A stretch of DNA of 64,000 bases from positions 62,001-126,000 of the IMG/VR virus record IMGVR_UViG_3300013093_000017; one strand, written 5' to 3'. Within the stretch, counting starts at the first letter, position 1, and each line of letters starts with the position of its first letter. The translations under genes were made by a program, and so were the position numbers. Under the pieces are notes generated by a model. It saw only the letters and a list, made by a program, of their open reading frames with translations, did not search any database and was not told the origin of the DNA. This document shows positions 9,123 through 21,542 of this stretch, piece by piece.

Positions 9123-9313
9123 TGAGCAAATTTAAAGTAAGAAAAGACACGTGGGTAGAAGGCATATTGCAAGTTGAAGAGGTATTATTTGATCTATTCG
9201 AAGATGCTGTAGCACACGTTAAGCACAGTCATCACCATGGTGCTAAAGTAATCGATGAAGAAGGTCGCGTGATCCATCGCGAAGGTCCAGCTACTGGCGA
9301 ATCGTACGCTTAA
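9122..9313 (+). CDS. Hypothetical protein
   Basis: 63 aa, SD GGAG, coupled to the upstream stop. Confidence 0.7.
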   Translation: MSKFKVRKDTWVEGILQVEEVLFDLFEDAVAHVKHSHHHGAKVIDEEGRVIHREGPATGESYA

Positions 9314-9334
9314 TAAAATAATTGAAAATAATGG

Positions 9335-9363
9335 TTGACAGGCGATTATTTTCAATATATAAT
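9335..9363 (+). promoter_or_regulatory. sigma70 promoter P1 of tRNA array leader
   Basis: TTGACA-17-TATAAT, followed by AGCTACATA. Confidence 0.85.
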
Positions 9364-9428
9364 AGCTACATATTTAGAGATTGATAAATAATCTTATAAA
9401 TAAAAGATAAATAAATTATCAAAAGAGG

Positions 9429-9457
9429 TTGACAACAACTAAATTTGATAATATAAT
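9429..9457 (+). promoter_or_regulatory. sigma70 promoter P2 of tRNA array leader
   Basis: TTGACA-17-TATAAT, followed by the same AGCTACATA as P1. Confidence 0.85.
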
Positions 9458-9494
9458 AGCTACATAGTAAGAAATTAATTAAAGGGAAAAGACA

Positions 9495-9644
9495 ATGTTT
9501 ACAACGCAACATCAATTTAGAGGATCGAAACAAGTGCAACTACTTGCCACGATGTCTTATTGGTCAGCGATTGAGACATTTGGCGGCAATGATCGCACAC
9601 CGAGTAATTGTATTAGGGTTCGAGAGGGATGGGATGGTTATTAA
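9495..9644 (+). CDS. Putative attenuator leader peptide (49 aa, all 20 amino acids)
   Basis: SD AAGGGA; MFTTQHQFRGSKQVQLLATMSYWSAIETFGGNDRTPSNCIRVREGWDGY*; its 3' end overlaps the antiterminator. Confidence 0.7.
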   Translation: MFTTQHQFRGSKQVQLLATMSYWSAIETFGGNDRTPSNCIRVREGWDGY

Positions 9645-9679
9645 GTAAATAACAAAATCCAAAACTTTAAGAACCCTAA
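9613..9679 (+). promoter_or_regulatory. Putative antiterminator hairpin
   Basis: TTAGGGTTC (9613-9621) pairs with GAACCCTAA (9671-9679); inner helices GGAT/ATCC and GTTATT/AATAAC. Confidence 0.7.
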
Positions 9680-9707
9680 GATCGAAAGACTTAGGGTTTT
9701 TTGTTTT
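9672..9707 (+). terminator. Rho-independent terminator (attenuator)
   Basis: AACCCTAAG-a-TC-GAAA-GA-CTTAGGGTT followed by a T-rich tract. Confidence 0.85.
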
Positions 9708-9810
9708 ATGTGTCTAGGAAACGAGGTCCAAGACAAGGCACATTAAAGATTGTATGTTGAACTGGCGGACAAGTGGATGGCATTTCCTTTTGTGGAAAGA
9801 AAATACTTGT

Positions 9811-9898
9811 TATAATAAAGCATTCTAACACGGGTAGGTAACGTGTGGGGAAGAAATTGCCCCTAGAGTGCTTTATTATACGCATTCATATGAGTGCG
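9811..9898 (+). ncRNA. Structured RNA: long closed stem plus adjacent hairpin
   Basis: TATAATAAAGCATTCTA...TAGAGTGCTTTATTATA, then CGCATTCATATGAGTGCG. Confidence 0.45.
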
Positions 9899-9905
9899 TT
9901 AACAG

Positions 9906-9986
9906 ATTGCAGTATTTTAGGTGGGCACCTACAGCGGCGGCAGCCGTCAAGATCGCAACTTGAGAGGTTCGAGTCCTCACTGCAAT
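9906..9986 (+). ncRNA. tRNA-like RNA without canonical anticodon arm or CCA
   Basis: ATTGCAGT/ACTGCAAT closing stem, T-arm GAGG-TTCGAGT-CCTC, three internal hairpins. Confidence 0.5.
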
Positions 9987-10038
9987 ATTTTAATACGGCC
10001 TTTGTCGCTAGCATAGCTGGTGCTCAAAGGTTCTTTAT

Positions 10039-10116
10039 CGGAGTGTATGTCAGTCTGGCTAGACGGCCTGCTTTGGGAGCAGGAGGCCGTAGGTTCGAAT
10101 CCTACCATTCCGACCA
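10039..10116 (+). tRNA. tRNA-Pro(TGG)
   Basis: Cloverleaf, CCTGC-TT-TGG-GA-GCAGG, CCA. Confidence 0.93.
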
Positions 10117-10120
10117 ATAT

Positions 10121-10196
10121 GTCCCTATCATCTAGCGGCCTAGGATACTGCCCTTTCACGGCAGGTACACGAGTTCGAATCTCGTTAGGGACACCA
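10121..10196 (+). tRNA. tRNA-Glu(TTC)
   Basis: CTGCC-CT-TTC-AC-GGCAG, CCA. Confidence 0.93.
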
Positions 10197-10202
10197 AATA
10201 AT

Positions 10203-10289
10203 GAGTGTTCGGGGACGTGGGAGTGTCTCGGCTGGCTGTAACCCAGTTGCCTTATGGCTTAGTAGGTTCGAATCCTACAACATTCACCA
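10203..10289 (+). tRNA. tRNA-Tyr(GTA)
   Basis: GCTGG-CT-GTA-AC-CCAGT, long variable arm, CCA. Confidence 0.88.
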
Positions 10290-10295
10290 AGTTAT

Positions 10296-10390
10296 GTCGC
10301 AGTTCCAGTTACACTAATCTCTCAGTTCAAAGCTGTTAGTGTGTAAAGGACACGAGAAAGTCAACTTCTTCTGGGTAGACTGTGACGCCA
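10296..10390 (+). ncRNA. CCA-terminated non-cloverleaf structured RNA
   Basis: GTCGCAGT/ACTGTGAC stem followed by G-CCA; internal TTACACTAA/TTAGTGTGTAA helix. Confidence 0.4.
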
Positions 10391-10394
10391 TTTT

Positions 10395-10504
10395 TAGACT
10401 CGTGTAGGAACTTTGAGATCGTATAACCTCTTGAAACTGGATAAGTGAGAGCCAGGCCAGTCAAAAACACGTACGGTAAATGCTGTGCAACTCGGCAGAG
10501 TCTA
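10395..10504 (+). ncRNA. Structured RNA with T-arm-like 3' hairpin
   Basis: TAGACTC/GAGTCTA closing stem; GCTG-TGCAACT-CGGC hairpin just before the 3' strand. Confidence 0.35.
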
Positions 10505-10619
10505 TTTTATAGTAGTAAATTTTTAGGAGAAACCAAAGTGAAGAGTACTAAACTTTAGTGTCATCTTTAATCCCATGTATGATTAAGGATAGGCACGTTA
10601 AACATCTTTATACATATAT

Positions 10620-10694
10620 GGGGGTATAATTCAATGGCTAGAATATCCGGCTTTTACCCGGACTATCAGAGTTCAAATCTCTGTGCCCTCACCA
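10620..10694 (+). tRNA. tRNA-Lys(TTT)
   Basis: TCCGG-CT-TTT-AC-CCGGA, CCA. Confidence 0.92.
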
Positions 10695-10699
10695 ACATA

Positions 10700-11581
10700 T
10701 TAAATTACATTCAGTGAGTGCAATTTAGTATGTTGTAATAATTTTAACAGTTGTTTTATTTTACTACCTGCTTGGTATTCGTCGTATGATATTCTAAATA
10801 CAGTAATGCCTAAATGGGTTTGTATATATGCATCACGCAGTTCGTCTGCTTCTTTATGTTTAGGCTTTTCGTGTTGTTTACCGTCAAGTTCTACTATAAG
10901 ATTTACGGTAGGGAAATAATAATCAACAAAATACCATTTACCTGTTAGATGATTTTTAATAAAGTGTTCGTCAATGTACTTGGTGGATATTTTATTATCA
11001 ACTAACCATCGTTCAAATGATTGTTCTAAATAAGATTTTTTATCTCTTCTGTAATTGCTTCTGCGATTGGTTTTGATGCGTTTAATTATCTTATCGGAAA
11101 TTAAAGATGACTTACATTCATCTGAACAGGTTTTGCGGTGACTGTGTTTAATAACAGTACCACATTGATGACAAAAAGATACTTTTGAATATTGCGGCAA
11201 TGGGTTTTCGTTATTATATTTTTGGACGCCCTTTGAGATTTTTTGTTTTCGGTTGAGGTCTATAGCAATACCTTTTCTATCTTTATTGTAATACACAGCA
11301 GAGCAAGATGTAGAACAAAATTTGTTATGTCTTCTTTTGTATTCGAGTGCTAAATTACATTGAATACATTTAGACGGAGACTGGATATAATCTAATTTTA
11401 TAGATTTTAATTTTTTATTATTTGCCTTAACAGCAGATATTTGTCCAAGTTTGCCATTTTTAAGATTTCGTAGTTTGCCTTCTTTGGTATGAGAAATAAG
11501 ATAATGAGAATGTATTCCTTTAGAGGTTTTGGGTTCTCGACAAACTACGCAGGAGCAAGGATAAGATGTTTTATTAGTCAT
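10700..11581 (-). CDS. Free-standing homing endonuclease (Zn-finger N-terminus, DUF559/Vsr-like nuclease)
   Basis: Several CxxC pairs; YFVDYYFP..LIVELDGKQH..D..RD; antisense inside the tRNA array; TATAAATA upstream on the minus strand. Confidence 0.75.
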   Translation of the reverse strand: MTNKTSYPCSCVVCREPKTSKGIHSHYLISHTKEGKLRNLKNGKLGQISAVKANNKKLKSIKLDYIQSPSKCIQCNLALEYKRRHNKFCSTSCSAVYYNKDRKGIAIDLNRKQKISKGVQKYNNENPLPQYSKVSFCHQCGTVIKHSHRKTCSDECKSSLISDKIIKRIKTNRRSNYRRDKKSYLEQSFERWLVDNKISTKYIDEHFIKNHLTGKWYFVDYYFPTVNLIVELDGKQHEKPKHKEADELRDAYIQTHLGITVFRISYDEYQAGSKIKQLLKLLQHTKLHSLNVI

Positions 11582-11628
11582 ACAAGTATTTATACATCAA
11601 AACGAATTTCTCCTACCAAATTGAAATA

Positions 11629-11720
11629 CCATACAAAAACACATTCTTCAAAGAATACAGGGTTCAATTCCCGGCCGTTGATCACGGAACTGCCAAGGTG
11701 GTGAGTGTATTCCTATATGG
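11629..11720 (+). ncRNA. Structured RNA with internal T-arm-like hairpin
   Basis: CCATA..ACATTC / GAGTGT..TATGG closing stem; GGG-TTCAATT-CCC. Confidence 0.35.
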
Positions 11721-11726
11721 TTCAAT

Positions 11727-11801
11727 GTTGTCTATAGTGTAGTGGTAGCACCCAATCCTGTGAAGATTGTAGTATGAGATCGATACTCATTAGACAACCC
11801 A
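11727..11801 (+). tRNA. tRNA-His(GTG)
   Basis: G-1 8-bp acceptor, CAATC-CT-GTG-AA-GATTG, atypical T-loop ATCGATA, CCA. Confidence 0.88.
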
Positions 11802-11808
11802 AAGTTTT

Positions 11809-11883
11809 GCCTCGTTCATATAGTGGTTATTATGTCCGCCTGTCTAGTGGAACATAGGGGTTCGATTCCCCTACGAGGCGCCA
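11809..11883 (+). tRNA. tRNA-Asp(GTC)
   Basis: TCCGC-CT-GTC-TA-GTGGA, CCA. Confidence 0.9.
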
Positions 11884-11892
11884 AATTAAAGG

Positions 11893-11921
11893 TTGACGTG
11901 AAAAATCGTTGACTATATAAT
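11893..11921 (+). promoter_or_regulatory. Internal sigma70 promoter in tRNA array
   Basis: TTGACG-17-TATAAT. Confidence 0.75.
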
Positions 11922-11943
11922 AGTAACAGTTAGAAAGATCAAT

Positions 11944-12016
11944 TGCGGTAGAAGTGTAGTGGCGCATGATAGTCTCATAAGCTATCGGGGTGGTTCGATT
12001 CCAACGTCCGCATCCA
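11944..12016 (+). tRNA. tRNA-Met(CAT), imperfect stems
   Basis: ATAGT-CT-CAT-AA-GCTAT, TTCGA loop, CCA; mismatches in acceptor and T stems. Confidence 0.7.
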
Positions 12017-12032
12017 TAATTAGGAGAAGTAA

Positions 12033-12194
12033 ATGGCAGTTAAGAAAGCAAATCCAATGCAGACACGCACTGGTAAGACACGGTTAGGTCCATTGAATTT
12101 AACACAGTTACAAACTATGTTAGAAAAGACTTCTAAGAAAAAGATCAAGGCGCAGATTCAAAAGCGCATTGCAGAATTAGAAGCACGTAAGTAA
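12033..12194 (+). CDS. Small basic hypothetical protein (53 aa), not in ORF track
   Basis: SD AGGAGA; MAVKKANPMQTRTGKTRLGPLNLTQLQTMLEKTSKKKIKAQIQKRIAELEARK. Confidence 0.75.
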   Translation: MAVKKANPMQTRTGKTRLGPLNLTQLQTMLEKTSKKKIKAQIQKRIAELEARK

Positions 12195-12202
12195 AGTTTT
12201 AC

Positions 12203-12277
12203 GCCCAGTTAGCAGAGTGGTAATGCGCCTCACTTGTAATGAGGATATCGGGAGTTCGATTCTCTCACTGGGCACCA
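12203..12277 (+). tRNA. tRNA-Thr(TGT)
   Basis: CCTCA-CT-TGT-AA-TGAGG, CCA. Confidence 0.93.
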
Positions 12278-12284
12278 GTATTAA

Positions 12285-12369
12285 GCCCCTTTGGTGGAAT
12301 TGGTAGACACCGCGGTCTTAGAAGCCGCCGACGAAAGTCATGAGAGTTCGAGTCTCTTGGGGGGCACCA
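12285..12369 (+). tRNA. tRNA-Leu(TAG)
   Basis: GCGGT-CT-TAG-AA-GCCGC, long variable arm, CCA. Confidence 0.92.
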
Positions 12370-12379
12370 AAAGTTTTAT

Positions 12380-12453
12380 GCGGGATTAGTTTAATGGTAG
12401 AACTGCAGATTTCCAATCTCCTGGTGAGGGTTCGATTCCCTTATCCCGCTCCA
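12380..12453 (+). tRNA. tRNA-Gly(TCC)
   Basis: GCAGA-TT-TCC-AA-TCTCC, CCA. Confidence 0.9.
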
Positions 12454-12458
12454 GAACA

Positions 12459-12669
12459 CAAGGTTTACACTTTTACCTTATAGAAAGTGGGTCATTGCTA
12501 ATACCAGAACGGCAGGGTGCGCACGATGGTCTAGACCATACCACAAGTCCCACTATCCGGGAGCCTTGAAAGTATCGTGGGAGTTTTATTGTTTCTTACC
12601 ATATGGAAACAGTTGGACAGGGTAACTACTCAGTTTTGGGCTCGGTTGTGCGAGTAGCAAAACACTGAT
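12459..12669 (+). ncRNA. Candidate structured ncRNA(s) between tRNA-Gly and tRNA-Ala
   Basis: CAAGGTT/AGCCTTG multibranch with CACTTTT/AGAAAGTG, TGGTCTAGACCA and TCCC/GGGA hairpins; no credible ORF. Confidence 0.35.
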
Positions 12670-12671
12670 TC

Positions 12672-12746
12672 GGGCTGTTAGTATACTGGGTATTATTCCT
12701 GCCTTGCACGTAGGAGAAGACGGATCGTAACCGTCACGGTCCACCA
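12672..12746 (+). tRNA. tRNA-Ala(TGC)
   Basis: G3:U70 pair, CCTGC-CT-TGC-AC-GTAGG, T-loop ATCGTAA, CCA. Confidence 0.9.
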
Positions 12747-12752
12747 TATTAT

Positions 12753-12829
12753 AGAGGATTAGCTCAGTTGGTACGAGCAACTGCCTTACAAGCAGAAGGT
12801 CACTGGTTCGACCCCAGTATCCTCTACCA
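12753..12829 (+). tRNA. tRNA-Val(TAC)
   Basis: CTGC-CT-TAC-AA-GCAG, CCA. Confidence 0.93.
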
Positions 12830-12836
12830 GTTCTAT

Positions 12837-12915
12837 TCCGCAGAATCCGAGCTAGGCGCACGGACTTGACTGTTAATCAATGATTAGCTGGGTTCGAATC
12901 CCAGATGCGGAGCCA
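12837..12915 (+). tRNA. tRNA-Asn(GTT)
   Basis: TTGA-CT-GTT-AA-TCAA, CCA. Confidence 0.88.
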
Positions 12916-12919
12916 TATT

Positions 12920-13020
12920 TGCAGAGCGTGGGCTAGTCTAGCGTCGACGTACACTCCGAGTTAGTTGCAACTAACAACAGATTGTGAAAACTAGACAACG
13001 AGGTTCGATTCCTTACTGCA
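12920..13020 (+). ncRNA. tRNA-like RNA, same acceptor/T-arm module as 9906-9986
   Basis: TGCAG...GAGG-TTCGATT-CCTT-ACTGCA; internal GTCTAG/CTAGAC and GTTAGTTGCAACTAAC helices. Confidence 0.5.
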
Positions 13021-13029
13021 TCTTAAATT

Positions 13030-13490
13030 TATCGTCGATAGCCGGAGCAAATCCTTTGAGCGGCTTGAGCATAAGCAAGGCACCGAGACGCAGGTGTATA
13101 TTTCCGGTGAAAGTCCGGACGGTAATAGATTTTATCTCCCTCCGTAAAGGATGGAACAGTGAGCTCTCAGTTCCCTGCAAGGTAGTAGTAGACAAGAAGC
13201 AAACAGGCGTACTAGTCATACGCAATGTGCTGATTAGGTCGCTATGCAACCTCTGACAATAGGTCATGACTGGCCAACGATAGGAGACACTTGTAAAGCT
13301 CTCACAGTTTAACCGGTGGTGAAAATCCACAGGGGAGGCCAGTTTTGGGATAGACGGCAAGATCTTAAACGAGTCCTAAGTAGCGTCAGTAGTACGAAAC
13401 ACATTTTGCGCGAAATATAGATGAGCTCTCTTGTTCGAGACAATCCAGCAAGGCCTTTGGAGAAAAGGATAGCTGGGCGCCCAAAAACCC
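13030..13490 (+). ncRNA. Candidate large structured ncRNA (~460 nt; GOLLD/ROOL-type context)
   Basis: GC-richer non-coding block with T-loop hairpins CCGG-TGAAAGT-CCGG and GTGG-TGAAAAT-CCAC and long-range helices CTGGCC/GGCCAG and TTTTGGG/CCCAAAA. Confidence 0.55.
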
Positions 13491-13496
13491 TTTTAT

Positions 13497-13571
13497 GCTT
13501 CGGTAGCTCAGTGGTAGAGCAATCGGTTGATAACCGATAGGCCGGTGGATCGTTCCCACCTCGAAGCACCA
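13497..13571 (+). tRNA. tRNA-Ile(GAT)
   Basis: ATCGG-TT-GAT-AA-CCGAT, T-loop ATCGTTC, CCA. Confidence 0.9.
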
Positions 13572-13579
13572 TTTATATG

Positions 13580-13608
13580 TTGACAGACGGATAAACATCT
13601 GTTATACT
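13580..13608 (+). promoter_or_regulatory. Internal sigma70 promoter
   Basis: TTGACA-17-TATACT. Confidence 0.75.
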
Positions 13609-13775
13609 ATGTTTTAAGATTTGGAAGAAAGCCGGTACATTATGTATTCGAGGTTAGGAGAGACCGGCAAACCGTCCGATTAGAGTAGGTAATACTGCGG
13701 TTCGACTCCGCCGATTGAATTACTGTATGATTCTGCACATACCTAACAGGCCTGTATTGGCCGCAGATCGTTTAT

Positions 13776-13864
13776 GGAAGGTTATGCAATCTGGGATATT
13801 GCCGCGCACTTGAAATGCGCTGGAGCCTACGGGCCAGGAGTTCGATTCTGCCATCCTTCCGCCA
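13776..13864 (+). tRNA. tRNA-Ser(TGA)
   Basis: GCGCA-CT-TGA-AA-TGCGC, long variable arm, G73-CCA. Confidence 0.85.
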
Positions 13865-13876
13865 GTTTGAAAATAC

Positions 13877-13967
13877 GGAGAGTGGGCCGGACGGTAAGGC
13901 ACCACCCTGCTAAGGTGTACACTTGTGATGAACAGGTGACAGGGTTCGACTCCCTGACTCTCCGCCA
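13877..13967 (+). tRNA. tRNA-Ser(GCT)
   Basis: CACC-CT-GCT-AA-GGTG, long variable arm, CCA. Confidence 0.92.
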
Positions 13968-13972
13968 AATAC

Positions 13973-14008
13973 CCGGTGTTAGTTAAATGGATATAACAGG
14001 GGATTTCG
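13973..14008 (+). pseudogene. 5' half of a tRNA-Arg-like gene, truncated in the anticodon loop
   Basis: CCGGTGT-TA-GTTA-AATGGATA-TAAC-A-GGGGA-TTTC, then an abrupt switch to TATAAATA. Confidence 0.65.
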
Positions 14009-14022
14009 TATAAATAAACAAT

Positions 14023-14099
14023 GCGGTTGTAGCTCAGTGGATTAGAGCAACGAGCTTCTACCTCGTTGGCCGGGGGTTCGAGTCCCTCCAGCCGCACCA
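14023..14099 (+). tRNA. tRNA-Arg(TCT)
   Basis: ACGAG-CT-TCT-AC-CTCGT, CCA. Confidence 0.93.
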
Positions 14100-14114
14100 T
14101 TTAATAGAATACTT

Positions 14115-14798
14115 ATGTATCAAAAATTAACTAACTGTAAATATTGCAATGTTTCATTACTTGAAATGACTACTTCTCGGCGAGCAAATCACTCTCGATG
14201 GTGCAAACTAAATCCTAAGCATACTGAATATATAAATGCATTAGAAATTTCTAGAGAGAATATAGTTAATCGACGTAATCAATTTATGAAGGCTAAAGAG
14301 GATGGAAGGCCGATTCCGCCAGGAACACAGACCGGAAAACCAGGTACAATGTTAGGTAAGAAGCATTCTTCTAAAACTAAACAGCGTCAAAAAGAAAAGG
14401 CACTAGCAAGTCCTCATAGAAGATTAGTTAGATCTATTCGGAAATATACAAAAAAGGACGGAACTATAGTTAGTTTAGATTCGTTCTGGGAAGAAGCATT
14501 AGCTATTCGGCTTGATACTATAGGTGTTAACTGGATAAGACCGTCGCCTATTAAATGGATAGACAATGATAACGTAACTCATAATTACTTTCCAGATTTC
14601 TATCTACCAGAGTTTGATTTATATTTAGATCCAAAAAACCCGTATGCTGTCAAAGCTCAACAAGTTAAGATACAGTGTTTAAAACAGCAAATACAAAACC
14701 TTATAATTATAACAAGTTTAGAGGATTGCAACAATTATATTCCTCAACCAGTATTGCCCTATAGTTCAATGGAAGAACGGCTCCCTTATAAGGAGTGA
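14115..14798 (+). CDS. Free-standing homing endonuclease (NUMOD3-like repeat, PD-(D/E)XK nuclease)
   Basis: GKKHSSKTKQRQKE, SFWEE, YFPDFYLPEFDLYLDPK; its 3' end overlaps tRNA-Ile(TAT). Confidence 0.75.
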   Translation: MYQKLTNCKYCNVSLLEMTTSRRANHSRWCKLNPKHTEYINALEISRENIVNRRNQFMKAKEDGRPIPPGTQTGKPGTMLGKKHSSKTKQRQKEKALASPHRRLVRSIRKYTKKDGTIVSLDSFWEEALAIRLDTIGVNWIRPSPIKWIDNDNVTHNYFPDFYLPEFDLYLDPKNPYAVKAQQVKIQCLKQQIQNLIIITSLEDCNNYIPQPVLPYSSMEERLPYKE

Positions 14799-14846
14799 GT
14801 GCTAGATAAGCCGCTAATGTAGGTTCGAGTCCTACTAGGGGTACCA
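14755..14846 (+). tRNA. tRNA-Ile(TAT) with long variable arm
   Basis: GCTCC-CT-TAT-AA-GGAGT, ~20 nt variable arm, CCA; top of acceptor stem imperfect. Confidence 0.75.
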
Positions 14847-14848
14847 AT

Positions 14849-14923
14849 GCTGATGTAGCGTAGAGGTAGCGCAACGCCTTGGTAAGGCGTAGGTCGTGGG
14901 TTCAACTCCCATCATCAGCACCA
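14849..14923 (+). tRNA. tRNA-Thr(GGT)
   Basis: ACGCC-TT-GGT-AA-GGCGT, CCA. Confidence 0.92.
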
Positions 14924-14942
14924 GCAATACAGTAAGATCAAT

Positions 14943-14972
14943 TGGCTCATGGTGTAGTGGTAGCACAACTCA
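14943..14972 (+). pseudogene. 5' fragment of a tRNA-Gln-like gene
   Basis: TGGCTCA-TG-GTGT-AGTGGTA-GCAC-A-ACTCA; ends before the anticodon loop. Confidence 0.6.
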
Positions 14973-15012
14973 AAAAAATCCTTTATGTTGCTAAATACAG
15001 TAAGGAGATAAT

Positions 15013-15573
15013 ATGTTAGTTACTATTATAGAATACATGAACCAGACGAGAGAAGAAAGACGCTCTCGATTAAAGTTAGATGAACCATGCGATGAGCGCG
15101 GATTAGTGTACAGTTATCATTTAACTGGGCTATTAGCGTACTTAACAAACACAAGTATACCTAAAAAAGGTGATAACGCTATTGTGTGTCATGGATGTAA
15201 CAACGCAAAATGTTCAAACCCAAATCATTTATATTGGGGATCTTATAAGGATAATCATACGGATCAGGTTGAAAATGGAACATGGGATAGTCCGTATGCT
15301 AGGGCTAAGAAAAAATACAGTACTGTTGAGATGAATGAGATATACTCAAACAATGCCAAAGGTAATAAAGGTAATAAACAACCTAGATCCGAAGAGCATA
15401 AAAGAAAAATATCTGAGTCAATGAAAAAAGTTCAGCAAGAACTAAATCCTAATTTAGGAAAAGTAAGAAACAAAGTAGAATGCCCTCATTGTGGAAAGCA
15501 AGGTGCTATGAATACAATGAGCCGATGGCATTTTGATAATTGTCTTAATAGGCGTGTGGTGAAGATGGCTTAA
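15013..15573 (+). CDS. Free-standing HNH homing endonuclease with NUMOD3-like repeat and Zn ribbon
   Basis: VCHGCNNAKCSNPNHLYWGSYKDN, RSEEHKRKISESMK, CPHCGK; its 3' end overlaps tRNA-Gln. Confidence 0.8.
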   Translation: MLVTIIEYMNQTREERRSRLKLDEPCDERGLVYSYHLTGLLAYLTNTSIPKKGDNAIVCHGCNNAKCSNPNHLYWGSYKDNHTDQVENGTWDSPYARAKKKYSTVEMNEIYSNNAKGNKGNKQPRSEEHKRKISESMKKVQQELNPNLGKVRNKVECPHCGKQGAMNTMSRWHFDNCLNRRVVKMA

Positions 15574-15627
15574 CACACTGGATTTTGATTCCAGCATTCC
15601 TAGGTTCGAATCCTAGCACGCCTGCCA
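15550..15627 (+). tRNA. tRNA-Gln(TTG)
   Basis: CTGGA-TT-TTG-AT-TCCAG, CCA. Confidence 0.92.
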
Positions 15628-15747
15628 GAACAGTCCGGGAACAGCTCTCCTTTCGTAAGAAAGTGTAACTGACTATAGCTGGGATTTACCAGTGAACTTA
15701 CAGGACGCTGTAAGGTACGGGCATACAGGAGGATAACTCCAATCTAT

Positions 15748-15821
15748 TCCGGTGTAGTATAATGGCAGTGCGACGGTCTCCAAAACCGTTAGTGGGGGTT
15801 CGATTCCCTCCACCGGAGCCA
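15748..15821 (+). tRNA. tRNA-Trp(CCA)
   Basis: ACGGT-CT-CCA-AA-ACCGT, CCA. Confidence 0.93.
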
Positions 15822-15830
15822 AACAATGTG

Positions 15831-15859
15831 TTGACTTTTAGTTAAGTTGATAGTATAAT
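15831..15859 (+). promoter_or_regulatory. sigma70 promoter
   Basis: TTGACT-17-TATAAT. Confidence 0.75.
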
Positions 15860-15886
15860 GTGCTTTTATTTGAAATGGAGCATGAA

Positions 15887-16351
15887 ATGTCAAAAGTTAT
15901 TAAATCAGAGTATGTTGAAGCAGCCATGGAACAATTAGATAGTGCGGCTAAATTACTCAAAACAGCCTACACCAATCCAAACAAAAATCTTGTGTTAATA
16001 TTAGACATGATTGATGATATTTGGGGGCAATTAGAATTGCTAGCTGATACACAGTACGACAAAGAAAATCCAGGTAAAGAAATGACGCAGGCTCAATATG
16101 ACACTGAGCACAGTGAGCGGGTGGCTAGGATTAAAGCCCTACAAGAAGTTACCATTACCAAAGTAGACAAGGCCACATTCAAAGCCATTAGTGATGATTT
16201 ATACACAGCAATTGGCAATGTCAGTGGCAAATACAATCTGTCTATTGCCTTTCCGTTATCCAGTTTCTCATTCCGTGCCTATGATTCGGAGAATCCCGAG
16301 CAGTATTGGCCACTAGGTAGAGAGTTTGATACAGAAATAAATCCATTATAG
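15887..16351 (+). CDS. Hypothetical protein
   Basis: ORF 15860-16351; likely start ATG 15887 after SD GGAG. Confidence 0.7.
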   Translation: MSKVIKSEYVEAAMEQLDSAAKLLKTAYTNPNKNLVLILDMIDDIWGQLELLADTQYDKENPGKEMTQAQYDTEHSERVARIKALQEVTITKVDKATFKAISDDLYTAIGNVSGKYNLSIAFPLSSFSFRAYDSENPEQYWPLGREFDTEINPL

Positions 16352-16352
16352 G

Positions 16353-16381
16353 TTGACAGGTACCATATGCTCCTGTATTAT
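16353..16381 (+). promoter_or_regulatory. sigma70 promoter
   Basis: TTGACA-17-TATTAT. Confidence 0.65.
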
Positions 16382-16409
16382 TAATGAATAGTCAAAAGGA
16401 CAAAAGAAT

Positions 16410-16979
16410 ATGAACGTTACATTACGTAAAGCAAGTGCGTTACAGAACGCAATCAACGACACAATCAAAGGCATTCAGCTTAAAGTAGCTGTAAACCTAA
16501 GTGAGTTCCAAGATGCAGAAACAGTAATTTCTAAATCTCGCCAAGCATTGTTAAACAATGTTGATCGCAAGGTAGCACTAACCAAGGCATTGTATGCAAT
16601 TCGCGCCTCAGTAGGTGCAGCAAACAACGCCTCAGTAGATGCACTGTTGGCACAGGTAGCACAGGTTGAAAAAACAATCCAAATCTACACAAACTTAGCT
16701 GAAACAGAAGTGCGTGAAGATGCCACAGTTATTGCAGGTAAGTTGGATAAGATTAAGAACCGCACAGCAGATGCTCGTCCAAGTTACTACGGACACAGTG
16801 ACGAAGTAAACACCAGTGTATTAACACAAGATGATATTGAATCTTTCCGAGGTTTCATTGCACTGGCAAAGAAAAACAAACAGACTTTGCAGGATCAAAT
16901 CCTTGAAGCAAACGTTCGCACTGAAATCACTTTAGATGCAGACACAGTAGCAACACTAACAGCAGAAAAATTGCTGTAA
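16410..16979 (+). CDS. Helical protein, possibly DIP1984-like family
   Basis: Coiled-coil pattern; C-terminal LQDQILEANVRTEITL resembles the DIP1984-type ending (family call tentative). Confidence 0.6.
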   Translation: MNVTLRKASALQNAINDTIKGIQLKVAVNLSEFQDAETVISKSRQALLNNVDRKVALTKALYAIRASVGAANNASVDALLAQVAQVEKTIQIYTNLAETEVREDATVIAGKLDKIKNRTADARPSYYGHSDEVNTSVLTQDDIESFRGFIALAKKNKQTLQDQILEANVRTEITLDADTVATLTAEKLL

Positions 16980-17021
16980 TAGTTTTTGGTGGTTTGGCTC
17001 TAGGGCTAAAATCACCCAGAT

Positions 17022-17249
17022 GTGAGAAAGAGACGAGGATTGGCAAGGACATCATACATCGTATGATTCCATACTTAATGAGCAATCGCCTTGAAAAGCG
17101 ATCGTGTTTGCGTGTTCCGGTTATTATATAAATTTGTTTATTGCCACCGTTGAAATATGCAAGCCCCTGTGTTTTGAACATTGTCTTTTGTCAGCGGATA
17201 TTATAATAATATCTTTTGTCATTTGCTGTGCCATTTACTTACTTTCTCA
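17022..17249 (+). ncRNA. Candidate ncRNA downstream of 16410-16979
   Basis: TGAGAAAG/CTTTCTCA long-range closure; repeated (A/T)TTG motifs separated by short hairpins. Confidence 0.4.
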
Positions 17250-17261
17250 ATCTGTTTCTTC

Positions 17262-17339
17262 GCACACGTGGCTGAGTGGCCCAAAGCAGCGGCCTGCAAA
17301 GCCGTAAAACCGCCGGTTCAAATCCGGCCGTGTGCTCCA
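17262..17339 (+). tRNA. tRNA-Cys(GCA)
   Basis: GCGGC-CT-GCA-AA-GCCGT, U73-CCA. Confidence 0.92.
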
Positions 17340-17340
17340 T

Positions 17341-17416
17341 AGTAATGTAGCATAGTGGCTAATGCGGCACCTTCATACGGTGTATATCGTGAGTTCGAGT
17401 CTCACCATTACTACCA
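17341..17416 (+). tRNA. tRNA-Met/Ile2(CAT)
   Basis: GCACC-TT-CAT-AC-GGTGT, CCA. Confidence 0.88.
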
Positions 17417-17423
17417 GCTTTAC

Positions 17424-17532
17424 ATTAACAACCTTAACGCAACTCGGTACACGGATACCTGATCAGTGGGAGTGTTTGACATAGTCGGACCGCTGCAACA
17501 CTGTGGGTGGCAAAGCCGTGCTCGTTGTTAAT
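17424..17532 (+). ncRNA. Candidate small structured RNA
   Basis: ATTAACAAC/GTTGTTAAT closing stem with nested CACGG/CCGTG and CAGTG/CACTG helices. Confidence 0.4.
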
Positions 17533-17534
17533 TT

Positions 17535-17610
17535 GCCCTGTTAGTTCAACGGATTAGAATTAGAGTCTTCGAAACTCAGGATGGGGGTTCGATTCCCTCA
17601 CGGGGCACCA
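17535..17610 (+). tRNA. tRNA-Arg(TCG)
   Basis: GAGT-CT-TCG-AA-ACTC, CCA. Confidence 0.9.
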
Positions 17611-17660
17611 AACAAGTAATCGCATAATGTAGCGGAATACACTACGTTATGTAAATCAAT

Positions 17661-17736
17661 GCGGCTGTAGCTCAGTTGGTAGAGCGTCTGCTTGCCAAGC
17701 AGAAGGTCACGAGTTCGAGACTCGTTAGCCGCTCCA
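17661..17736 (+). tRNA. tRNA-Gly(GCC)
   Basis: TCTGC-TT-GCC-AA-GCAGA, CCA. Confidence 0.94.
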
Positions 17737-17746
17737 TTTATTTTGA

Positions 17747-17775
17747 TTGACAGTTGGTAATACCTATGCTATAAT
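17747..17775 (+). promoter_or_regulatory. sigma70 promoter
   Basis: TTGACA-17-TATAAT. Confidence 0.8.
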
Positions 17776-17799
17776 ATGCTTGTACAGTTAGGAAATGAT

Positions 17800-18105
17800 A
17801 TGAAACACTACGTATATGAACCAGGTATAAAGAAAATTGAAAAAGTATTACCGTATTCTGTGGCTGTTCCGCAGGGTTATAAAACTCACGCACAGGCCCT
17901 ATGCCAACGAATATTAGGCAAAAGATATTGTCGTTGGGATCCAAGATGGCGCAGAGTTAATAATTGGACAGTGAAAACCACTACCAGGTGGACAGTATAT
18001 GAAGATGCAGTTTGGCACTACAAAGATGGTATACTTTACTTCAAAGATGAAGCTAATACTAAAATGCTTACAATGGTATTATTAAGTAAAACCAAAAGGA
18101 GATAG
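17800..18105 (+). CDS. Hypothetical protein
   Basis: ORF 17776-18105; likely start 17800 after AGGA. Confidence 0.65.
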   Translation: MKHYVYEPGIKKIEKVLPYSVAVPQGYKTHAQALCQRILGKRYCRWDPRWRRVNNWTVKTTTRWTVYEDAVWHYKDGILYFKDEANTKMLTMVLLSKTKRR

Positions 18106-18109
18106 TACT

Positions 18110-18592
18110 ATGAAACCATGGATTGAAAACATCAGCTTAGAAGATGTAAAGAAAGGCTATCACCACGATGCTGGCGATAATTCTATGCTAATTCAAATCG
18201 TAGATCCTGGTGTAGAGTTTCCAACTCCTAAGTACAAGTTTAAGCGAGTATCACAGTACTTCTTCCTTGATGTAGAGGATAGAGATATTCCCGGTGCTAT
18301 ATTTGATGCGGCAATCACTGACGCAGACGCTATCGGTATTGCCGAAGATTTGAAATACGCATTGGCCAATAACATGAACGTAATTGTTCACTGTCATATG
18401 GGTGTGTGCCGTAGTGGTGCTGTAGCAGAAGTAGGTGTTATGTTAGGTTTCCAAGATACTGAAAAGTATCGTATTCCTAACACAATGGTCAAGCGTAAAC
18501 TTATGGAATACTTTGGTATGACATACACAGAGTCCGAGCTCCCTAAAGGGGCTTGGGCACTTGACGAAAATGGAATTAGACATTATTATTAA
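18110..18592 (+). CDS. Protein-tyrosine/dual-specificity phosphatase-like protein
   Basis: VHCHMGVCRS (CX5R) motif. Confidence 0.8.
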   Translation: MKPWIENISLEDVKKGYHHDAGDNSMLIQIVDPGVEFPTPKYKFKRVSQYFFLDVEDRDIPGAIFDAAITDADAIGIAEDLKYALANNMNVIVHCHMGVCRSGAVAEVGVMLGFQDTEKYRIPNTMVKRKLMEYFGMTYTESELPKGAWALDENGIRHYY

Positions 18593-18598
18593 GAATAT

Positions 18599-18674
18599 GC
18601 TACCTTAGCTCATCTGGTAGAGCACCGGCCTGAAGAGTCGGGTGTGCTTGGTTCAAGTCCAAGAGGTAGCACCA
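18599..18674 (+). tRNA. tRNA-Phe(GAA)
   Basis: CCGGC-CT-GAA-GA-GTCGG, CCA. Confidence 0.92.
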
Positions 18675-18690
18675 AACAAAGGAAATAGAT

Positions 18691-18858
18691 ATGGCAGGCA
18701 TTTACGGAGTTTATGAAAAATACGAAGGTCCAGAAGACTGTGATGTAGCCTATTCTAAAGTACAATCTGGCGAATGGGATCTAGCACGCTTTAAGGAATA
18801 TGTGAGCTGTGTTGAGAAGATCACATGGCAAGATGCCACCGCAGATGAGAGTTTCTAA
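18691..18858 (+). CDS. Small hypothetical protein (55 aa), not in ORF track
   Basis: SD AAGGA; MAGIYGVYEKYEGPEDCDVAY... Confidence 0.65.
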   Translation: MAGIYGVYEKYEGPEDCDVAYSKVQSGEWDLARFKEYVSCVEKITWQDATADESF

Positions 18859-18860
18859 TC

Positions 18861-19121
18861 TTGACAGAAGATGAACAACTAATGTGGGATGTGCTCAAGG
18901 CATCACCTGATGCTGATTGGGTAGAGTTCCGTAAACAGCATAATCGACTTTGGCTAACTAAAGATCGCAGAATTGTCCTGATAAAGAACATGCAAAGCGA
19001 CTACATTCTTAGTTGTGTTAATATGTTGGAAGCATTAAGTCAAACCAACACTGCGGCCTATAAGGGATTGATTAAAGAATTGCGCCAAAGAGGAAGTCAG
19101 ATACCTGACAACTCAATATAG
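18861..19121 (+). CDS. Hypothetical protein
   Basis: 86 aa ORF in co-directional run. Confidence 0.6.
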   Translation: MTEDEQLMWDVLKASPDADWVEFRKQHNRLWLTKDRRIVLIKNMQSDYILSCVNMLEALSQTNTAAYKGLIKELRQRGSQIPDNSI

Positions 19122-19137
19122 AAAAGAGGATAACGAT

Positions 19138-19593
19138 ATGAACAGTACATTTAGCAGTTTGATTGGACACCGCATCAACGCAGTGTTTCTCGCCAACGCA
19201 AATGAGACCATTGTTTTCCGCACGACTGAGGGAAAGTATCTACGATTTGATACCTGCAATGATTGTTGCAACACTGTTTGGTTTAATCACATTAACGGTA
19301 GTGGCTGTGTTGGGCAGGGTGACACCTTTGATCTTATCCGTGGTGCATTAGTTATAGGCTGCGAGGATAAAGATTGGACTGAGAATAGAGCCTGGACCCC
19401 AGAAGATGGCGGCGATTACGGTGATACTATTCAAGACGGATTCTACACCATCAAGACTGACCGCGGTTATATTGATCTAGAAGTGCGTAACGATCACAAC
19501 GGCTACTACGGTGGCACTGTTATGGAAAATGAAGATCTTGATTGGGAGATTACCGATCTAGAAAATCTTGTAGAGATTAAGGAAGATTTCTAA
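19138..19593 (+). CDS. Hypothetical phage protein
   Basis: SD GAGGA; DCCN and HNGYYGG motifs. Confidence 0.7.
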   Translation: MNSTFSSLIGHRINAVFLANANETIVFRTTEGKYLRFDTCNDCCNTVWFNHINGSGCVGQGDTFDLIRGALVIGCEDKDWTENRAWTPEDGGDYGDTIQDGFYTIKTDRGYIDLEVRNDHNGYYGGTVMENEDLDWEITDLENLVEIKEDF

Positions 19594-19594
19594 A

Positions 19595-19870
19595 ATGAAA
19601 ATTATCAAGTTAGACCGCAGACACAGAATGCGGCGAGATTTTGATATGCGATATGCTCTAGTTTGGGAAAGTTATGGATATGTTTGCAGACCATATGAAA
19701 AATGGTTAGAAAAGCAATTTGGAGTAAGTTGGTATACACATAATCCTCATTGGAAGTCAGGATACGGTAGCAATTCTAGCCGTGGCGATCGTCCAACTTT
19801 CTATGTCGCAGTCAAAGAAAAAAGTACATTAACAATGATGTTTTTGGCATTAGGAGATACAAATGAATAA
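19595..19870 (+). CDS. Hypothetical protein
   Basis: Tightly packed ORF. Confidence 0.65.
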   Translation: MKIIKLDRRHRMRRDFDMRYALVWESYGYVCRPYEKWLEKQFGVSWYTHNPHWKSGYGSNSSRGDRPTFYVAVKEKSTLTMMFLALGDTNE

Positions 19871-20207
19871 ATTTGATTGGGGCGGTATATTCAGCAAAGT
19901 GCCAGACCATACTCAAGAGGCACTCGAACGCTATTTCCTGTACGGATTAGAGCCAGGCAGTTTCTTACAAGCGGTATTAAGCAATGACCTGTACAGTGCT
20001 GTGGCCCGTGCAGATACTTGGAACAAAACTGCTATAGCAGAAATTGTAACTTGGATTGCTCACAACGCACCGGAAGGCAGTTGGGGACATCCTGACTATT
20101 ACCGTGAATGGGTTAACAAAGGTCCTGCATTTGTTCGATTTGAAAAGAGTCGTGTTTGGAATATTTTGTCTAATGAACACACAGAAATGAAGGAACCTGA
20201 GTGGTGA
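19863..20207 (+). CDS. Hypothetical phage protein
   Basis: SD AGGAG; PGSFLQAVLSNDL motif. Confidence 0.7.
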   Translation: MNKFDWGGIFSKVPDHTQEALERYFLYGLEPGSFLQAVLSNDLYSAVARADTWNKTAIAEIVTWIAHNAPEGSWGHPDYYREWVNKGPAFVRFEKSRVWNILSNEHTEMKEPEW

Positions 20208-20392
20208 AACAGAAACCAAAATGGGTTGAAACTCGAGAAGCTCTTAAAACAATGGGTCAAGAACCTTTAGAGTTTATTGGCAAAATGGGCGCCGATGGGG
20301 TCATTAATGGCTTACTACCTAACGGTGAAGAGTACGGTTGGTATAAACGTAGAGGCACTAAAGATACTAAATTTAAAGGAAGGAAAGTTTAA
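20201..20392 (+). CDS. Hypothetical protein
   Basis: Coupled to its neighbours. Confidence 0.55.
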   Translation: MVKQKPKWVETREALKTMGQEPLEFIGKMGADGVINGLLPNGEEYGWYKRRGTKDTKFKGRKV

Positions 20393-20964: not shown

Positions 20965-20970
20965 GCCTTT

Positions 20971-20994
20971 AAATAGGGCTTGCCCTATTTTTTT
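20971..20994 (+). terminator. Rho-independent terminator
   Basis: AAATAGGG-CTTG-CCCTATTT plus T tract. Confidence 0.7.
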
Positions 20995-21000
20995 GACTTA

Positions 21001-21138
21001 TTAATCGCAGTCTGAATATGCTTGTACTAAGCGTGCAACACATTCTGTGTCACCTGGCTTACATACAATATTTGGTATACTTGGAGTTGTTTCTTCTTGC
21101 AGGGGTTGGATTGGTAATGTATCTGTAGTATTTGACAT
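21001..21138 (-). CDS. Small hypothetical protein (45 aa), not in ORF track
   Basis: SD AGGTGA; MSNTTDTLPIQ...CKPGDTECVARLVQAYSDCD. Confidence 0.55.
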   Translation of the reverse strand: MSNTTDTLPIQPLQEETTPSIPNIVCKPGDTECVARLVQAYSDCD

Positions 21139-21251
21139 TTTGTGTCACCTTTCTAAAATGAGATTGTGTCTCTAATGATTTATTTATTAAACTACTATTG
21201 TATATTAAAGTACCAATATTGTCAACACCTTGATAAATTTTGATAAATTAG

Positions 21252-21280: not shown

Positions 21281-21286
21281 AAACAA

Positions 21287-21541: not shown

Positions 21542-21542
21542 A

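Follow-up and report, generated by a model that had tools for sequence, protein, structure and literature searches.

Introduction

The described system nearest to the one reported here is SegB of phage T4, a free-standing GIY-YIG homing endonuclease encoded within the T4 tRNA cluster, which cuts inside tRNA genes and drives inheritance of the T4 tRNA region (PMC2330249, PMC13096335). Related precedents are found in the intronless homing of SegF, SegG, and MobE in T4, in which a free-standing endonuclease gene lies next to a naturally resistant allele of its target gene, and cleavage of the sensitive allele leads to co-conversion of the enzyme gene together with the resistant allele (cited in PMC2330249 and PMC2988022). 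Group I introns of bacteria (reviewed in PMC3984707) also appear to place homing endonucleases in tRNA anticodon loops, a likely example being the PD-(D/E)XK enzyme I-Ssp6803I in tRNA-fMet.

Here we analyze a tRNA array in a 64,000-nt stretch of viral DNA (positions 62,001 to 126,000 of IMG/VR record IMGVR_UViG_3300013093_000017), referred to below as the window, which belongs to a T4-like jumbo phage with a contig of 229.7 kb. A sequence-only reading of the window had noted two truncated tRNA fragments, and possibly a third, beside predicted endonuclease genes and intact, divergent tRNAs, and had proposed that these are intronless homing cassettes which swap in a cleavage-resistant tRNA allele and so drive tRNA turnover. 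We confirm the observation, including the tentative third case, and find the interpretation supported, although cleavage of DNA by these enzymes and resistance of the new alleles are inferred. No description of this architecture was found in full-text literature searches.

Organization of the Three Cassettes

In each of the three cases, a stub of the old tRNA lies beside a (T/C)ATAAATA late-promoter-like motif, an endonuclease ORF, and a divergent intact tRNA of the same amino-acid identity. The features, in window coordinates, are as follows:

10620..10694 (+), replacement tRNA-Lys(TTT) of cassette C
10700..11581 (-), predicted endonuclease C, 293 aa, with a DUF559/Vsr-like PD-(D/E)XK domain at the C-terminus
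11587..11594 (-), TATAAATA late-promoter-like motif, 5 nt upstream of the start codon of endonuclease C
11606..11618 (+), 3' stub (last 13 nt) of the displaced tRNA-Lys, followed by the ancestral Lys-His spacer
13973..14007 (+), 5' stub (nt 1-35) of the displaced tRNA-Arg(TCT), ending inside the anticodon
14009..14016 (+), TATAAATA late-promoter-like motif, 6 nt upstream of the new tRNA-Arg
14023..14099 (+), replacement tRNA-Arg(TCT) of cassette A, 77 nt
14115..14798 (+), predicted endonuclease A, 227 aa, the last 44 nt of which run into tRNA-Ile(TAT) at 14755-14846
14943..14969 (+), 5' stub (nt 1-27) of the displaced tRNA-Gln(TTG), ending at the D-stem/anticodon-stem boundary
14970..15673 (+), full extent of cassette B, that is, sequence with no counterpart in empty-site relatives
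14990..15007 (+), GCTAAATA promoter-like motif (14990-14997) and AAGGAG ribosome-binding site
15013..15573 (+), predicted endonuclease B, 186 aa, probably HNH type
15550..15627 (+), replacement tRNA-Gln(TTG) of cassette B, 78 nt, overlapped by the last 24 nt of the HNH ORF

The stub of cassette A is 35/35 identical to nt 1-35 of the intact 75-nt tRNA-Arg(TCT) carried by 31 related loci, and identity stops inside the anticodon, after T34 C35, whereas the stub of cassette B is 27/27 identical to nt 1-27 of the intact 74-nt tRNA-Gln(TTG) of 13 related loci. The end coordinates given in the sequence-only reading (14008 and 14972) overshoot the homologous parts by 1 and 3 nt. Chance is excluded, since in a tRNA-masked scan of window 9000-24500 against the tRNAs of the related loci these two 5' fragments were the only hits at E<0.05 (E=5e-13 and 3e-8). 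The replacement tRNAs of cassettes A and B are intact by ARAGORN and Rfam (69.3 and 60.9 bits) but only 70% and 73% identical, respectively, to the old alleles. The old 3' halves are absent from the whole contig, and each new tRNA is the only copy of its isoacceptor in the array.

The third case, which had been raised only as a possibility, is also real. The 13-nt stub matches the 3' end of the tRNA-Lys of a syntenic relative, locus L033, and the match continues into the Lys-His spacer of L033, while the spacer upstream of tRNA-Lys in the window (10560-10622) is about 98% identical to L033 up to the first three bases of the tRNA (GGG). The replacement tRNA-Lys itself (63.8 bits in Rfam) is only 62% identical to that of L033. 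A BLAST search of the third-case spacer against tRNAs alone found nothing, and the match appeared only when tRNA 3' ends and whole loci were compared.

An 11-bp direct repeat, AATACAGTAAG, is present at 14926 and 14994, as the sequence-only reading had pointed out; however, its first copy is the ancestral Thr-Gln spacer, identical in the endonuclease-free relative L034, and the window holds 36 such 11-mer repeat pairs within 100 nt, so this is not a target-site duplication of the kind expected of a transposable element. Folding of 12917-13496 gave no sign of structure.

Predicted Endonucleases and Promoter-like Motifs

Endonuclease A combines a CCHC zinc finger (C8, C11, H26, C30), a NUMOD3-like stretch (about residues 80-95), and a PD-(D/E)XK core (E126, D161, D172, K174), the residues of which are invariant or nearly so in 34-37 homologues. 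It matches PHROG 15137 "endonuclease" (E=2.7e-9), and its family profile matches, among solved structures, only T7 endonuclease I (PDB 1m0d, 3cae), weakly (E=0.02-0.1) but through the catalytic E, PD, and (D/E)XK motifs. The structural model (pLDDT 83) has the PD-(D/E)XK nucleases RecE and TnsA as its best fold matches, along with Bax1 and XisH, with probabilities up to 1.00, albeit with weak E-values of 4e-3 or worse. Endonuclease B matches PHROGs 655, 1872, and 6254 (E=3e-9 to 1e-8), which include HNH and homing-endonuclease families, and its CH.C.N..CS.P.H.YWG motif is invariant in homologues, although its Pfam hits to His-Me (zf-His_Me_endon, 19 bits against a cut-off of 27), HNH_3 (14.4 bits against 24.8), and NUMOD3 are all below their cut-offs. 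Endonuclease C matches Pfam DUF559 (E=9.6e-9, 35.5 bits against a cut-off of 20.6); a search for its relatives gave only the near-identical contig and one 23%-identical hit, so its link to tRNA-Lys could not be generalized.

The motif TATAAATA is not over-represented by count in the window (5 found, 9 expected), and its suggested promoter role rests instead on its position across the whole contig, where about 20 of 26 (T/C)ATAAATA motifs lie 5-52 nt upstream of an ORF start, these ORFs including baseplate wedge, baseplate hub, virion proteins, and at least 7 endonuclease-like ORFs. In cassette B the bases flanking the motif and ribosome-binding site can pair in a hairpin that holds the ribosome-binding site (fold z=-1.9), and the equivalent hairpins in the related loci L203 and L146 give z=-3.3 and -5.3.

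Empty Sites in Endonuclease-Free Relatives

The sequence-only reading had predicted that relatives without the endonucleases would carry, at the corresponding sites, intact tRNAs beginning with the retained 5' sequences, and this came out as predicted for both the 18-mer and the 24-mer concerned. In the relative G001/L135, Ser(GCT) and Arg(TCT) are adjacent, and in L012, L050, L007, L045, L038, and L034, Ile(TAT), Thr(GGT), and Gln are adjacent, while endonuclease C is absent between Lys and His in L033, L009, and L046. In blastn comparisons with L012, L050, L007, L045, and L021, homology to empty-site relatives stops at 14969 and resumes at 15674. No stub occurred in an endonuclease-free context, the only other partial matches being cut by locus ends. 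Megablast and blastn searches of the region against GenBank phages gave no syntenic relative, only isolated tRNA matches.

Recurrence of the Layout in Other Phages

The new tRNA-Arg travels with the endonuclease: it is 97% identical to the tRNA next to a 72%-identical homologue of the enzyme in locus L057. More broadly, about 55 of 79 loci holding a homologue of endonuclease A have tRNA-Arg(TCT) 9-155 nt upstream on the same strand, while the downstream neighbor varies. Of 31 unique homologous cassettes, 26 have the promoter motif within 22 nt upstream of the tRNA, most often 7 nt away, and 24 of those 26 have an Arg-like 5' stub, ending at the anticodon, that scores above every shuffle and matches other alleles far better than the cassette's own tRNA (for example, a score of 35 against 9). 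For the stub of cassette L055, a prefix search for a matching intact allele found none, although BLAST had reported a 34/34 match. In the HNH family, 53 of 59 unique loci abut or overlap a downstream tRNA, and 30 of the 59 have a stub, which in 28 has the same amino-acid identity as that tRNA (27 Leu, 1 Gln).

The junctions are family-specific. BLAST matches to Arg stubs end at nt 26-37 and the read sequences run to the anticodon (nt 34-36), whereas Leu and Gln stubs of the HNH family end at nt 24-32, mostly 25-28. After excluding five fragments cut by locus ends, 25 of 38 unique 5' fragments lie within 260 nt upstream of such an endonuclease, a zone that is about 2% of the strand-specific sequence. 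Related units are also seen in two cultured T4-like phages, namely stub-promoter-endonuclease in Apostate and stub-promoter-endonuclease-tRNA-Arg in IME341.

A Model of tRNA Allele Replacement

The best reading of these data, to which we assign a probability of roughly 0.75, is that the array has been invaded three times by free-standing homing-endonuclease cassettes, each holding a late-type promoter, an endonuclease gene, and an intact tRNA of the same identity as the gene it hit. In the inferred sequence of events, the enzyme cuts, during co-infection, the resident tRNA gene of a phage that lacks the cassette: the PD-(D/E)XK enzyme would cut in the anticodon loop, the HNH enzyme just 3' of the D-stem, and the DUF559 enzyme near the 3' end. 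The break would then be repaired by copying the donor's cassette, whereby the part of the old gene on the promoter side of the cut survives as a stub, the rest is lost, and the donor's divergent tRNA, presumed not to be cut, takes over decoding. There are no biochemical or genetic data for these enzymes, and cleavage at the junction, resistance of the new allele, the repair route, and late timing of expression all remain inferences; in particular, the old and new tRNA-Arg share the anticodon-loop bases 33-38, so the basis of any resistance is unclear. In addition, locus L014 carries the new-type tRNA-Gln without the HNH gene, and the enzyme may therefore sit beside a naturally resistant allele and co-convert it, as in classical intronless homing, rather than own it.

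Phage tRNA arrays are usually explained by codon usage or by escape from host tRNA-cutting defenses. The present data point to a third force, in which selfish endonuclease cassettes tied to single isoacceptors (Arg-UCU, Leu, Gln, Lys) appear to overwrite resident tRNA genes and leave dated scars, giving a testable account of why tRNA arrays are so mosaic. They also provide a sequence signature (stub, TATAAATA, tRNA, endonuclease) for finding such events in any phage genome, and identify a large uncharacterized family of zinc-finger/NUMOD3/PD-(D/E)XK enzymes whose likely target, a tRNA anticodon loop, can be read from the scars.

Alternative Interpretations

The most serious alternative, which we nevertheless consider unlikely, is that the unit of stub, promoter, tRNA, and endonuclease is an old, vertically inherited arrangement rather than a scar of recent replacement, the stub being kept because it works, for example as an operator or half-site that lets the enzyme repress its own late promoter. 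I-TevI does this, its operator overlapping its late promoter and resembling its homing site (PMC2988022), and the constant close spacing of stub and promoter (0-12 nt) would fit. Closely related cassettes also often share similar stubs, pairwise endonuclease identity correlating weakly with stub identity (Mantel r=0.17, in a comparison whose stub zone included cassette spacer) and equally weakly with cassette tRNA identity (r=0.16), and some stubs may thus be inherited with the cassette rather than made afresh. On the other hand, the Arg stub of the window is identical to the resident allele of its own clade and unlike the stubs of the nearest cassettes, L055 and L057, despite the near identity of the cassette tRNA to that of L057, upstream neighbors differ between loci, and relatives show the intact gene at the same site. 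A regulatory role could coexist with a scar origin, and a more speculative extension, possible but improbable on present evidence, is that the stub keeps half of the enzyme's recognition site next to the late promoter as an operator for self-repression, while its conserved anticodon-loop end (CTTC) serves as a landing pad that lets the broken end of almost any tRNA-Arg allele prime copying of the cassette. Families of such cassettes would then act as isoacceptor-specific gene drives that keep swapping tRNA alleles among T4-like and jumbo phages, supplying the variation in anticodon stem-loops that phages use to escape tRNA-cutting host defenses.

It is very doubtful that the stubs are ordinary decayed pseudogenes or recombination debris lying by coincidence next to endonuclease genes. 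Phage tRNA arrays are indeed mosaic, 13 of the 38 unique 5' fragments lie away from these two endonuclease families, and L014 contains a tRNA-Ser 3' stub; however, the roughly 30-fold enrichment next to the endonucleases, the stereotyped end points, the matching identity of stub and linked tRNA in 28 of 30 cases, and the absence of decay in the 5' stubs of the window all speak against it. Scarcely more likely is a role of the PD-(D/E)XK protein in cutting the tRNA-Arg(UCU) of the host or of a rival at the anticodon while the linked tRNA resists, which would make the pair a shut-off-and-replace or counter-defense module. The tight linkage to one tRNA species and the location of the event at the anticodon are compatible with such a role, and anticodon nucleases and resistant phage tRNAs do seem to have precedent (PMC13096335 for Septu and tRNA-Tyr), but the truncations are in DNA, the zinc finger and NUMOD3-like motif are typical of DNA-binding homing enzymes, the catalytic core resembles a DNA junction nuclease, and the presence and absence among relatives is typical of mobile endonuclease genes.

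Comparison with Known Systems

T7 endonuclease I, to which the core of endonuclease A is weakly matched, is a junction resolvase without the zinc finger and NUMOD3-like N-terminal part, and it is not linked to tRNA genes. The group I introns noted above would share with cassette A an insertion point in the anticodon loop of a tRNA gene and, potentially, an enzyme of the PD-(D/E)XK type, but here no ribozyme and no 3' exon are present (no intron family was found in Rfam at E<=1), and function is kept by a second complete tRNA gene rather than by splicing.

Like the endonucleases described here, T4 SegB sits between tRNA genes, abutting tRNA-Arg with a 5-nt gap, and has a CATAAATA late-type motif in a hairpin with the ribosome-binding site (PMC2988022); its homing replaces the recipient's tRNA genes, as is inferred for the cassettes here. 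It differs in its GIY-YIG fold, for which none of the three ORFs gave a Pfam or PHROG hit, and in recognizing the common T-arm motif of many tRNAs rather than being tied to one isoacceptor. No tRNA stub lies upstream of segB in T4, where only 41 nt separate it from tRNA-Ile, and its homing replaces the region cleanly through flanking homology. Similarly, the targets of SegF, SegG, and MobE are protein genes that are replaced seamlessly, whereas here the inferred targets are tRNA genes, and the presumed sensitive allele is left as a truncated stub at a fixed position beside the cassette promoter.

Genomic setting of the tRNA array

The window covers bases 62001-126000 of a 229,675-bp IMG/VR viral contig, which is estimated to be 65% complete; the window has no near relative among GenBank phages. 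A tRNA array with 24 called tRNAs, on which Rfam agrees, runs from 10039 to 18674 on the + strand, and three endonuclease-like ORFs lie within it:
14115-14798, + strand: endonuclease A, 227 aa, without a Pfam hit but matching PHROG "endonuclease" and "Holliday junction resolvase" families
15013-15573, + strand: endonuclease B, 186 aa, HNH-like
10700-11581, - strand: endonuclease C, 293 aa, DUF559, above the Pfam cut-off

A degenerate tRNA-Asn(GTT)-like sequence (12836-12916), which is not called by ARAGORN but aligns to the 88-nt tRNA-Asn of the related locus L021, is followed by 580 nt with no convincing ORF before tRNA-Ile(GAT), whereas relatives have Val-Asn-Ile adjacent; this region (12836-13496) has no Rfam hit, and the fold z-score of 12917-13496 is +0.29. 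The 218-nt spacer between tRNA-Gly(TCC) and tRNA-Ala (12454-12671) is conserved at 75-84% identity in more than 20 related contigs, and may be a conserved noncoding RNA comparable to the T4 species 1 and 2 RNAs that lie in the T4 tRNA cluster. The "tRNA-Ile(TAT)" at 14755-14846 is 92 nt long, with a long variable arm holding a conserved CAGATAAG-like stretch, and the same unusual 90-95-nt type recurs in many related and unrelated loci. Finally, there is a 95-nt tRNA-like gene with a two-base "anticodon" according to ARAGORN (23405-23499; Rfam tRNA-Sec, 24 bits), and a weak tRNA (11945-12012; Rfam, 29.5 bits) that ARAGORN does not call.

Displaced tRNA alleles and empty sites

A sequence-only reading of the window had proposed that endonuclease cassettes disrupted tRNA genes while carrying replacement copies, and predicted two oligomers with which the intact genes should begin in relatives; we therefore scanned IMG/VR for both. 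The 18-mer occurs in 36 loci, of which 33 hold an intact 75-nt tRNA-Arg(TCT) beginning with it, 31 of those being identical in sequence; the other three are a near-identical sister contig with the window's arrangement and two matches cut by contig ends. The 24-mer occurs in 15 loci, and in 13 of these it starts an intact 74-nt tRNA-Gln(TTG). Window 13973-14007 equals nt 1-35 of that tRNA-Arg (35/35), and window 14943-14969 equals nt 1-27 of that tRNA-Gln (27/27). When the window's own tRNAs were masked, these were the only fragments found between 9000 and 24500 at E<0.05, and the 3' halves of the old genes are nowhere in the 229.7-kb contig. The T-arm and 3' acceptor of the old tRNA-Arg(TCT) allele (nt 47-67) are 21/21 identical to the window's tRNA-Arg(TCG) at 17582-17602, which suggests exchange between isoacceptor genes.

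Relatives provide the corresponding empty sites. Contig G001, which comprises loci L033 and L135, has the window's gene order, with Ser(GCT) directly followed by the intact old tRNA-Arg(TCT), and its identity to the window is 90% from the start of Ser(GCT) to 14007 and then stops. The related loci L012, L050, L007, L045, L038, and L034 have Ile(TAT)-Thr(GGT)-Gln adjacent, with homology to the window ending at 14969 and resuming at 15674. Cassette B, the unit built around endonuclease B, is therefore 14970-15673, and replaced nt 28-74 of the old tRNA-Gln plus some spacer.

The third case concerns endonuclease C. The spacer upstream of tRNA-Lys (10560-10622) is about 98% identical to L033 up to the first GGG of the tRNA, after which the tRNA body is only 62% identical. 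Beyond the minus-strand DUF559 ORF and its TATAAATA, window 11606-11618 aligns to the last 13 nt of the tRNA-Lys of L033 and continues into the Lys-His spacer of L033. All three endonuclease ORFs in the array therefore show the same pattern.

The 11-bp direct repeat reported to bracket the tRNA-Gln fragment is present as described, but its first copy is the ancestral Thr-Gln spacer, identical in the endonuclease-free L034, and such repeats are common in the window, with 36 pairs within 100 nt; it is not a target-site duplication.

Recurrence of the cassette architecture

Homologues of endonuclease A (40-74% identity) were found in 79 IMG/VR loci. In about 55 of these a tRNA-Arg(TCT) lies 9-155 nt upstream on the same strand, while the downstream neighbor varies, and several further loci have uncalled tRNA-Arg-like sequences there. 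Reading the upstream DNA shows a tRNA 5' half that runs to the anticodon (C/T-T-T-C/A), then (T/C)ATAAATA, then 6-11 nt, and then the intact tRNA. Of 31 unique cassettes, 26 have the promoter-like motif, and in 24 of these 26 the zone upstream scores above every shuffle against tRNA-Arg 5' halves. That zone matches other alleles far better than the cassette's own tRNA, so it is not a partial duplication of it. Upstream of the cassettes in loci L096 and L093, moreover, there is a hint of serial displacement of one cassette allele by another, since the stub in L096 (GCGACTGTAGCTCAGTGG...) resembles alleles that serve as the intact cassette tRNA in other loci such as L055.

The HNH family to which endonuclease B belongs has 59 unique loci. 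In 53 loci the ORF abuts or overlaps a downstream tRNA, 45 have a TAAATA-type motif, and 30 have a 5' stub above shuffles; in 28 of these 30 the stub has the amino-acid identity of the downstream tRNA (27 Leu, 1 Gln).

Junction positions are family-specific. The read sequences of the PD-(D/E)XK stubs run to the anticodon (nt 34-36), although blast matches to Arg stubs end anywhere from nt 26 to 37, and a tRNA(CAT) stub in a cultured phage also ends at the anticodon. A Met(CAT) fragment in locus L080 and Leu(TAA) fragments in loci L059 and L060 end at nt 35 as well, but no endonuclease of these families was found next to them. HNH-family Leu and Gln stubs end at nt 24-32, mostly 25-28. After excluding five fragments cut by locus ends, 25 of 38 unique 5' fragments lie within 260 nt upstream of one of these endonucleases, a zone that is about 2% of the strand-specific sequence.

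Related units are also present in cultured phages. Acinetobacter phage Apostate has a tRNA(CAT) 5' half ending at the anticodon, followed by TATAAATA and the homologous ORF, whereas E. coli phage IME341 has a partial tRNA-Arg stub ending in TCT, an AATAAATA motif, the ORF, and an intact tRNA-Arg(TCT) overlapping the end of the ORF.

Sequence and predicted structure of the endonucleases

Endonuclease A has an invariant CCHC zinc finger, a NUMOD3-like stretch, and a C-terminal core with invariant W125, H156-L164 (HNYFPDFYL), D172, P173, and K174, plus nearly invariant E126. The family profile matches only T7 endonuclease I in the PDB, aligned through its E, PD, and ExK catalytic motifs at E=0.02-0.1, and an AlphaFold model (pLDDT 83) finds PD-(D/E)XK nucleases first (RecE, TnsA, Bax1, XisH), though weakly. 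Endonuclease B keeps the HNH motif, and endonuclease C is Vsr/DUF559-like.

Late-promoter-like motifs

TATAAATA is the T4 late-promoter consensus (PMC2988022). Although it is not enriched by count in the window, about 20 of 26 (T/C)ATAAATA motifs in the whole contig lie 5-52 nt upstream of an ORF start on the same strand, and those ORFs include a baseplate wedge subunit (E=3e-283), a baseplate hub, two virion proteins, and at least seven endonuclease-like ORFs. The phage therefore looks T4-like in late transcription, and its endonuclease genes appear to carry their own late promoters. Hairpins that include the motif and pair with the ribosome-binding site are significant in the loci L203 and L146 (z=-3.3 and -5.3) and weaker in the window (z=-1.9), which matches the regulation known for I-TevI and segB (PMC2988022). 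In contrast to these late-type motifs of the cassettes, near-consensus sigma-70 promoters (TTGACA, 17 nt, TATAAT) are scattered through the tRNA array, at about 9337, 9430, 11893, 13581, 15832, and 16354, and the array is probably transcribed early by host polymerase.

Six more endonuclease-like ORFs, in the coordinates of contig G000, each have (T/C)ATAAATA 5-37 nt upstream, and the genome is heavily colonized:
24796-25572, 95113-95883, 137184-138011, 152516-153142, and 206001-206777: matches to PHROG homing or HNH endonuclease families
192022-192816: no PHROG hit, GIY-YIG-like only by eye

Inferred mechanism of tRNA replacement

The observation is thus confirmed, and the interpretation offered by the sequence-only reading, namely intronless homing cassettes, is supported by its own comparative test, with the finding extending well beyond the window. 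In this best-supported model, the enzyme cuts the resident tRNA gene of a co-infecting relative, repair copies the donor's promoter, enzyme gene, and divergent tRNA, and the promoter-side piece of the old gene remains. The comparisons show replacement, linkage, and recurrence, whereas DNA cleavage, its position at the stub end, the resistance of the new allele, and the repair route are inferred. The basis of any resistance is unclear, since old and new tRNA-Arg share loop bases 33-38. As to how the junction forms, one attractive but hypothetical route is priming from the broken 3' end through the conserved anticodon-loop bases, and another is protection of one cleavage product by the bound enzyme.

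In locus L014 the new-type 78-nt tRNA-Gln occurs behind a non-HNH ORF of about 165 aa, so the enzyme may simply neighbor a naturally resistant allele; the same locus has a 3' stub of tRNA-Ser(GCT) (L014 1477-1510), comprising T-arm, acceptor, and CCA, directly after tRNA-Thr(GGT). Related cassettes, in turn, often share stubs, and a matrix-correlation test could not separate inheritance from fresh formation; the window's stub is nevertheless identical to its own clade's allele, and unlike the stubs of the nearest cassettes.

Comparison with known systems

We found no description of the stub-promoter-tRNA-endonuclease unit in the full-text literature library that was searched. Group I introns in tRNA anticodon loops share the insertion point, but no ribozyme or 3' exon is present here. 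The closest precedent is T4 SegB, a free-standing endonuclease in a tRNA cluster that cuts tRNA genes and drives inheritance of the T4 tRNA region (PMC2330249); the 2008 paper states that endonuclease genes in phage tRNA clusters are rarely observed, and SegB has recently been tied to amplification of a tRNA that counters a host defense (PMC13096335). SegB is GIY-YIG, recognizes the shared T-arm motif, and has no stub upstream in T4.
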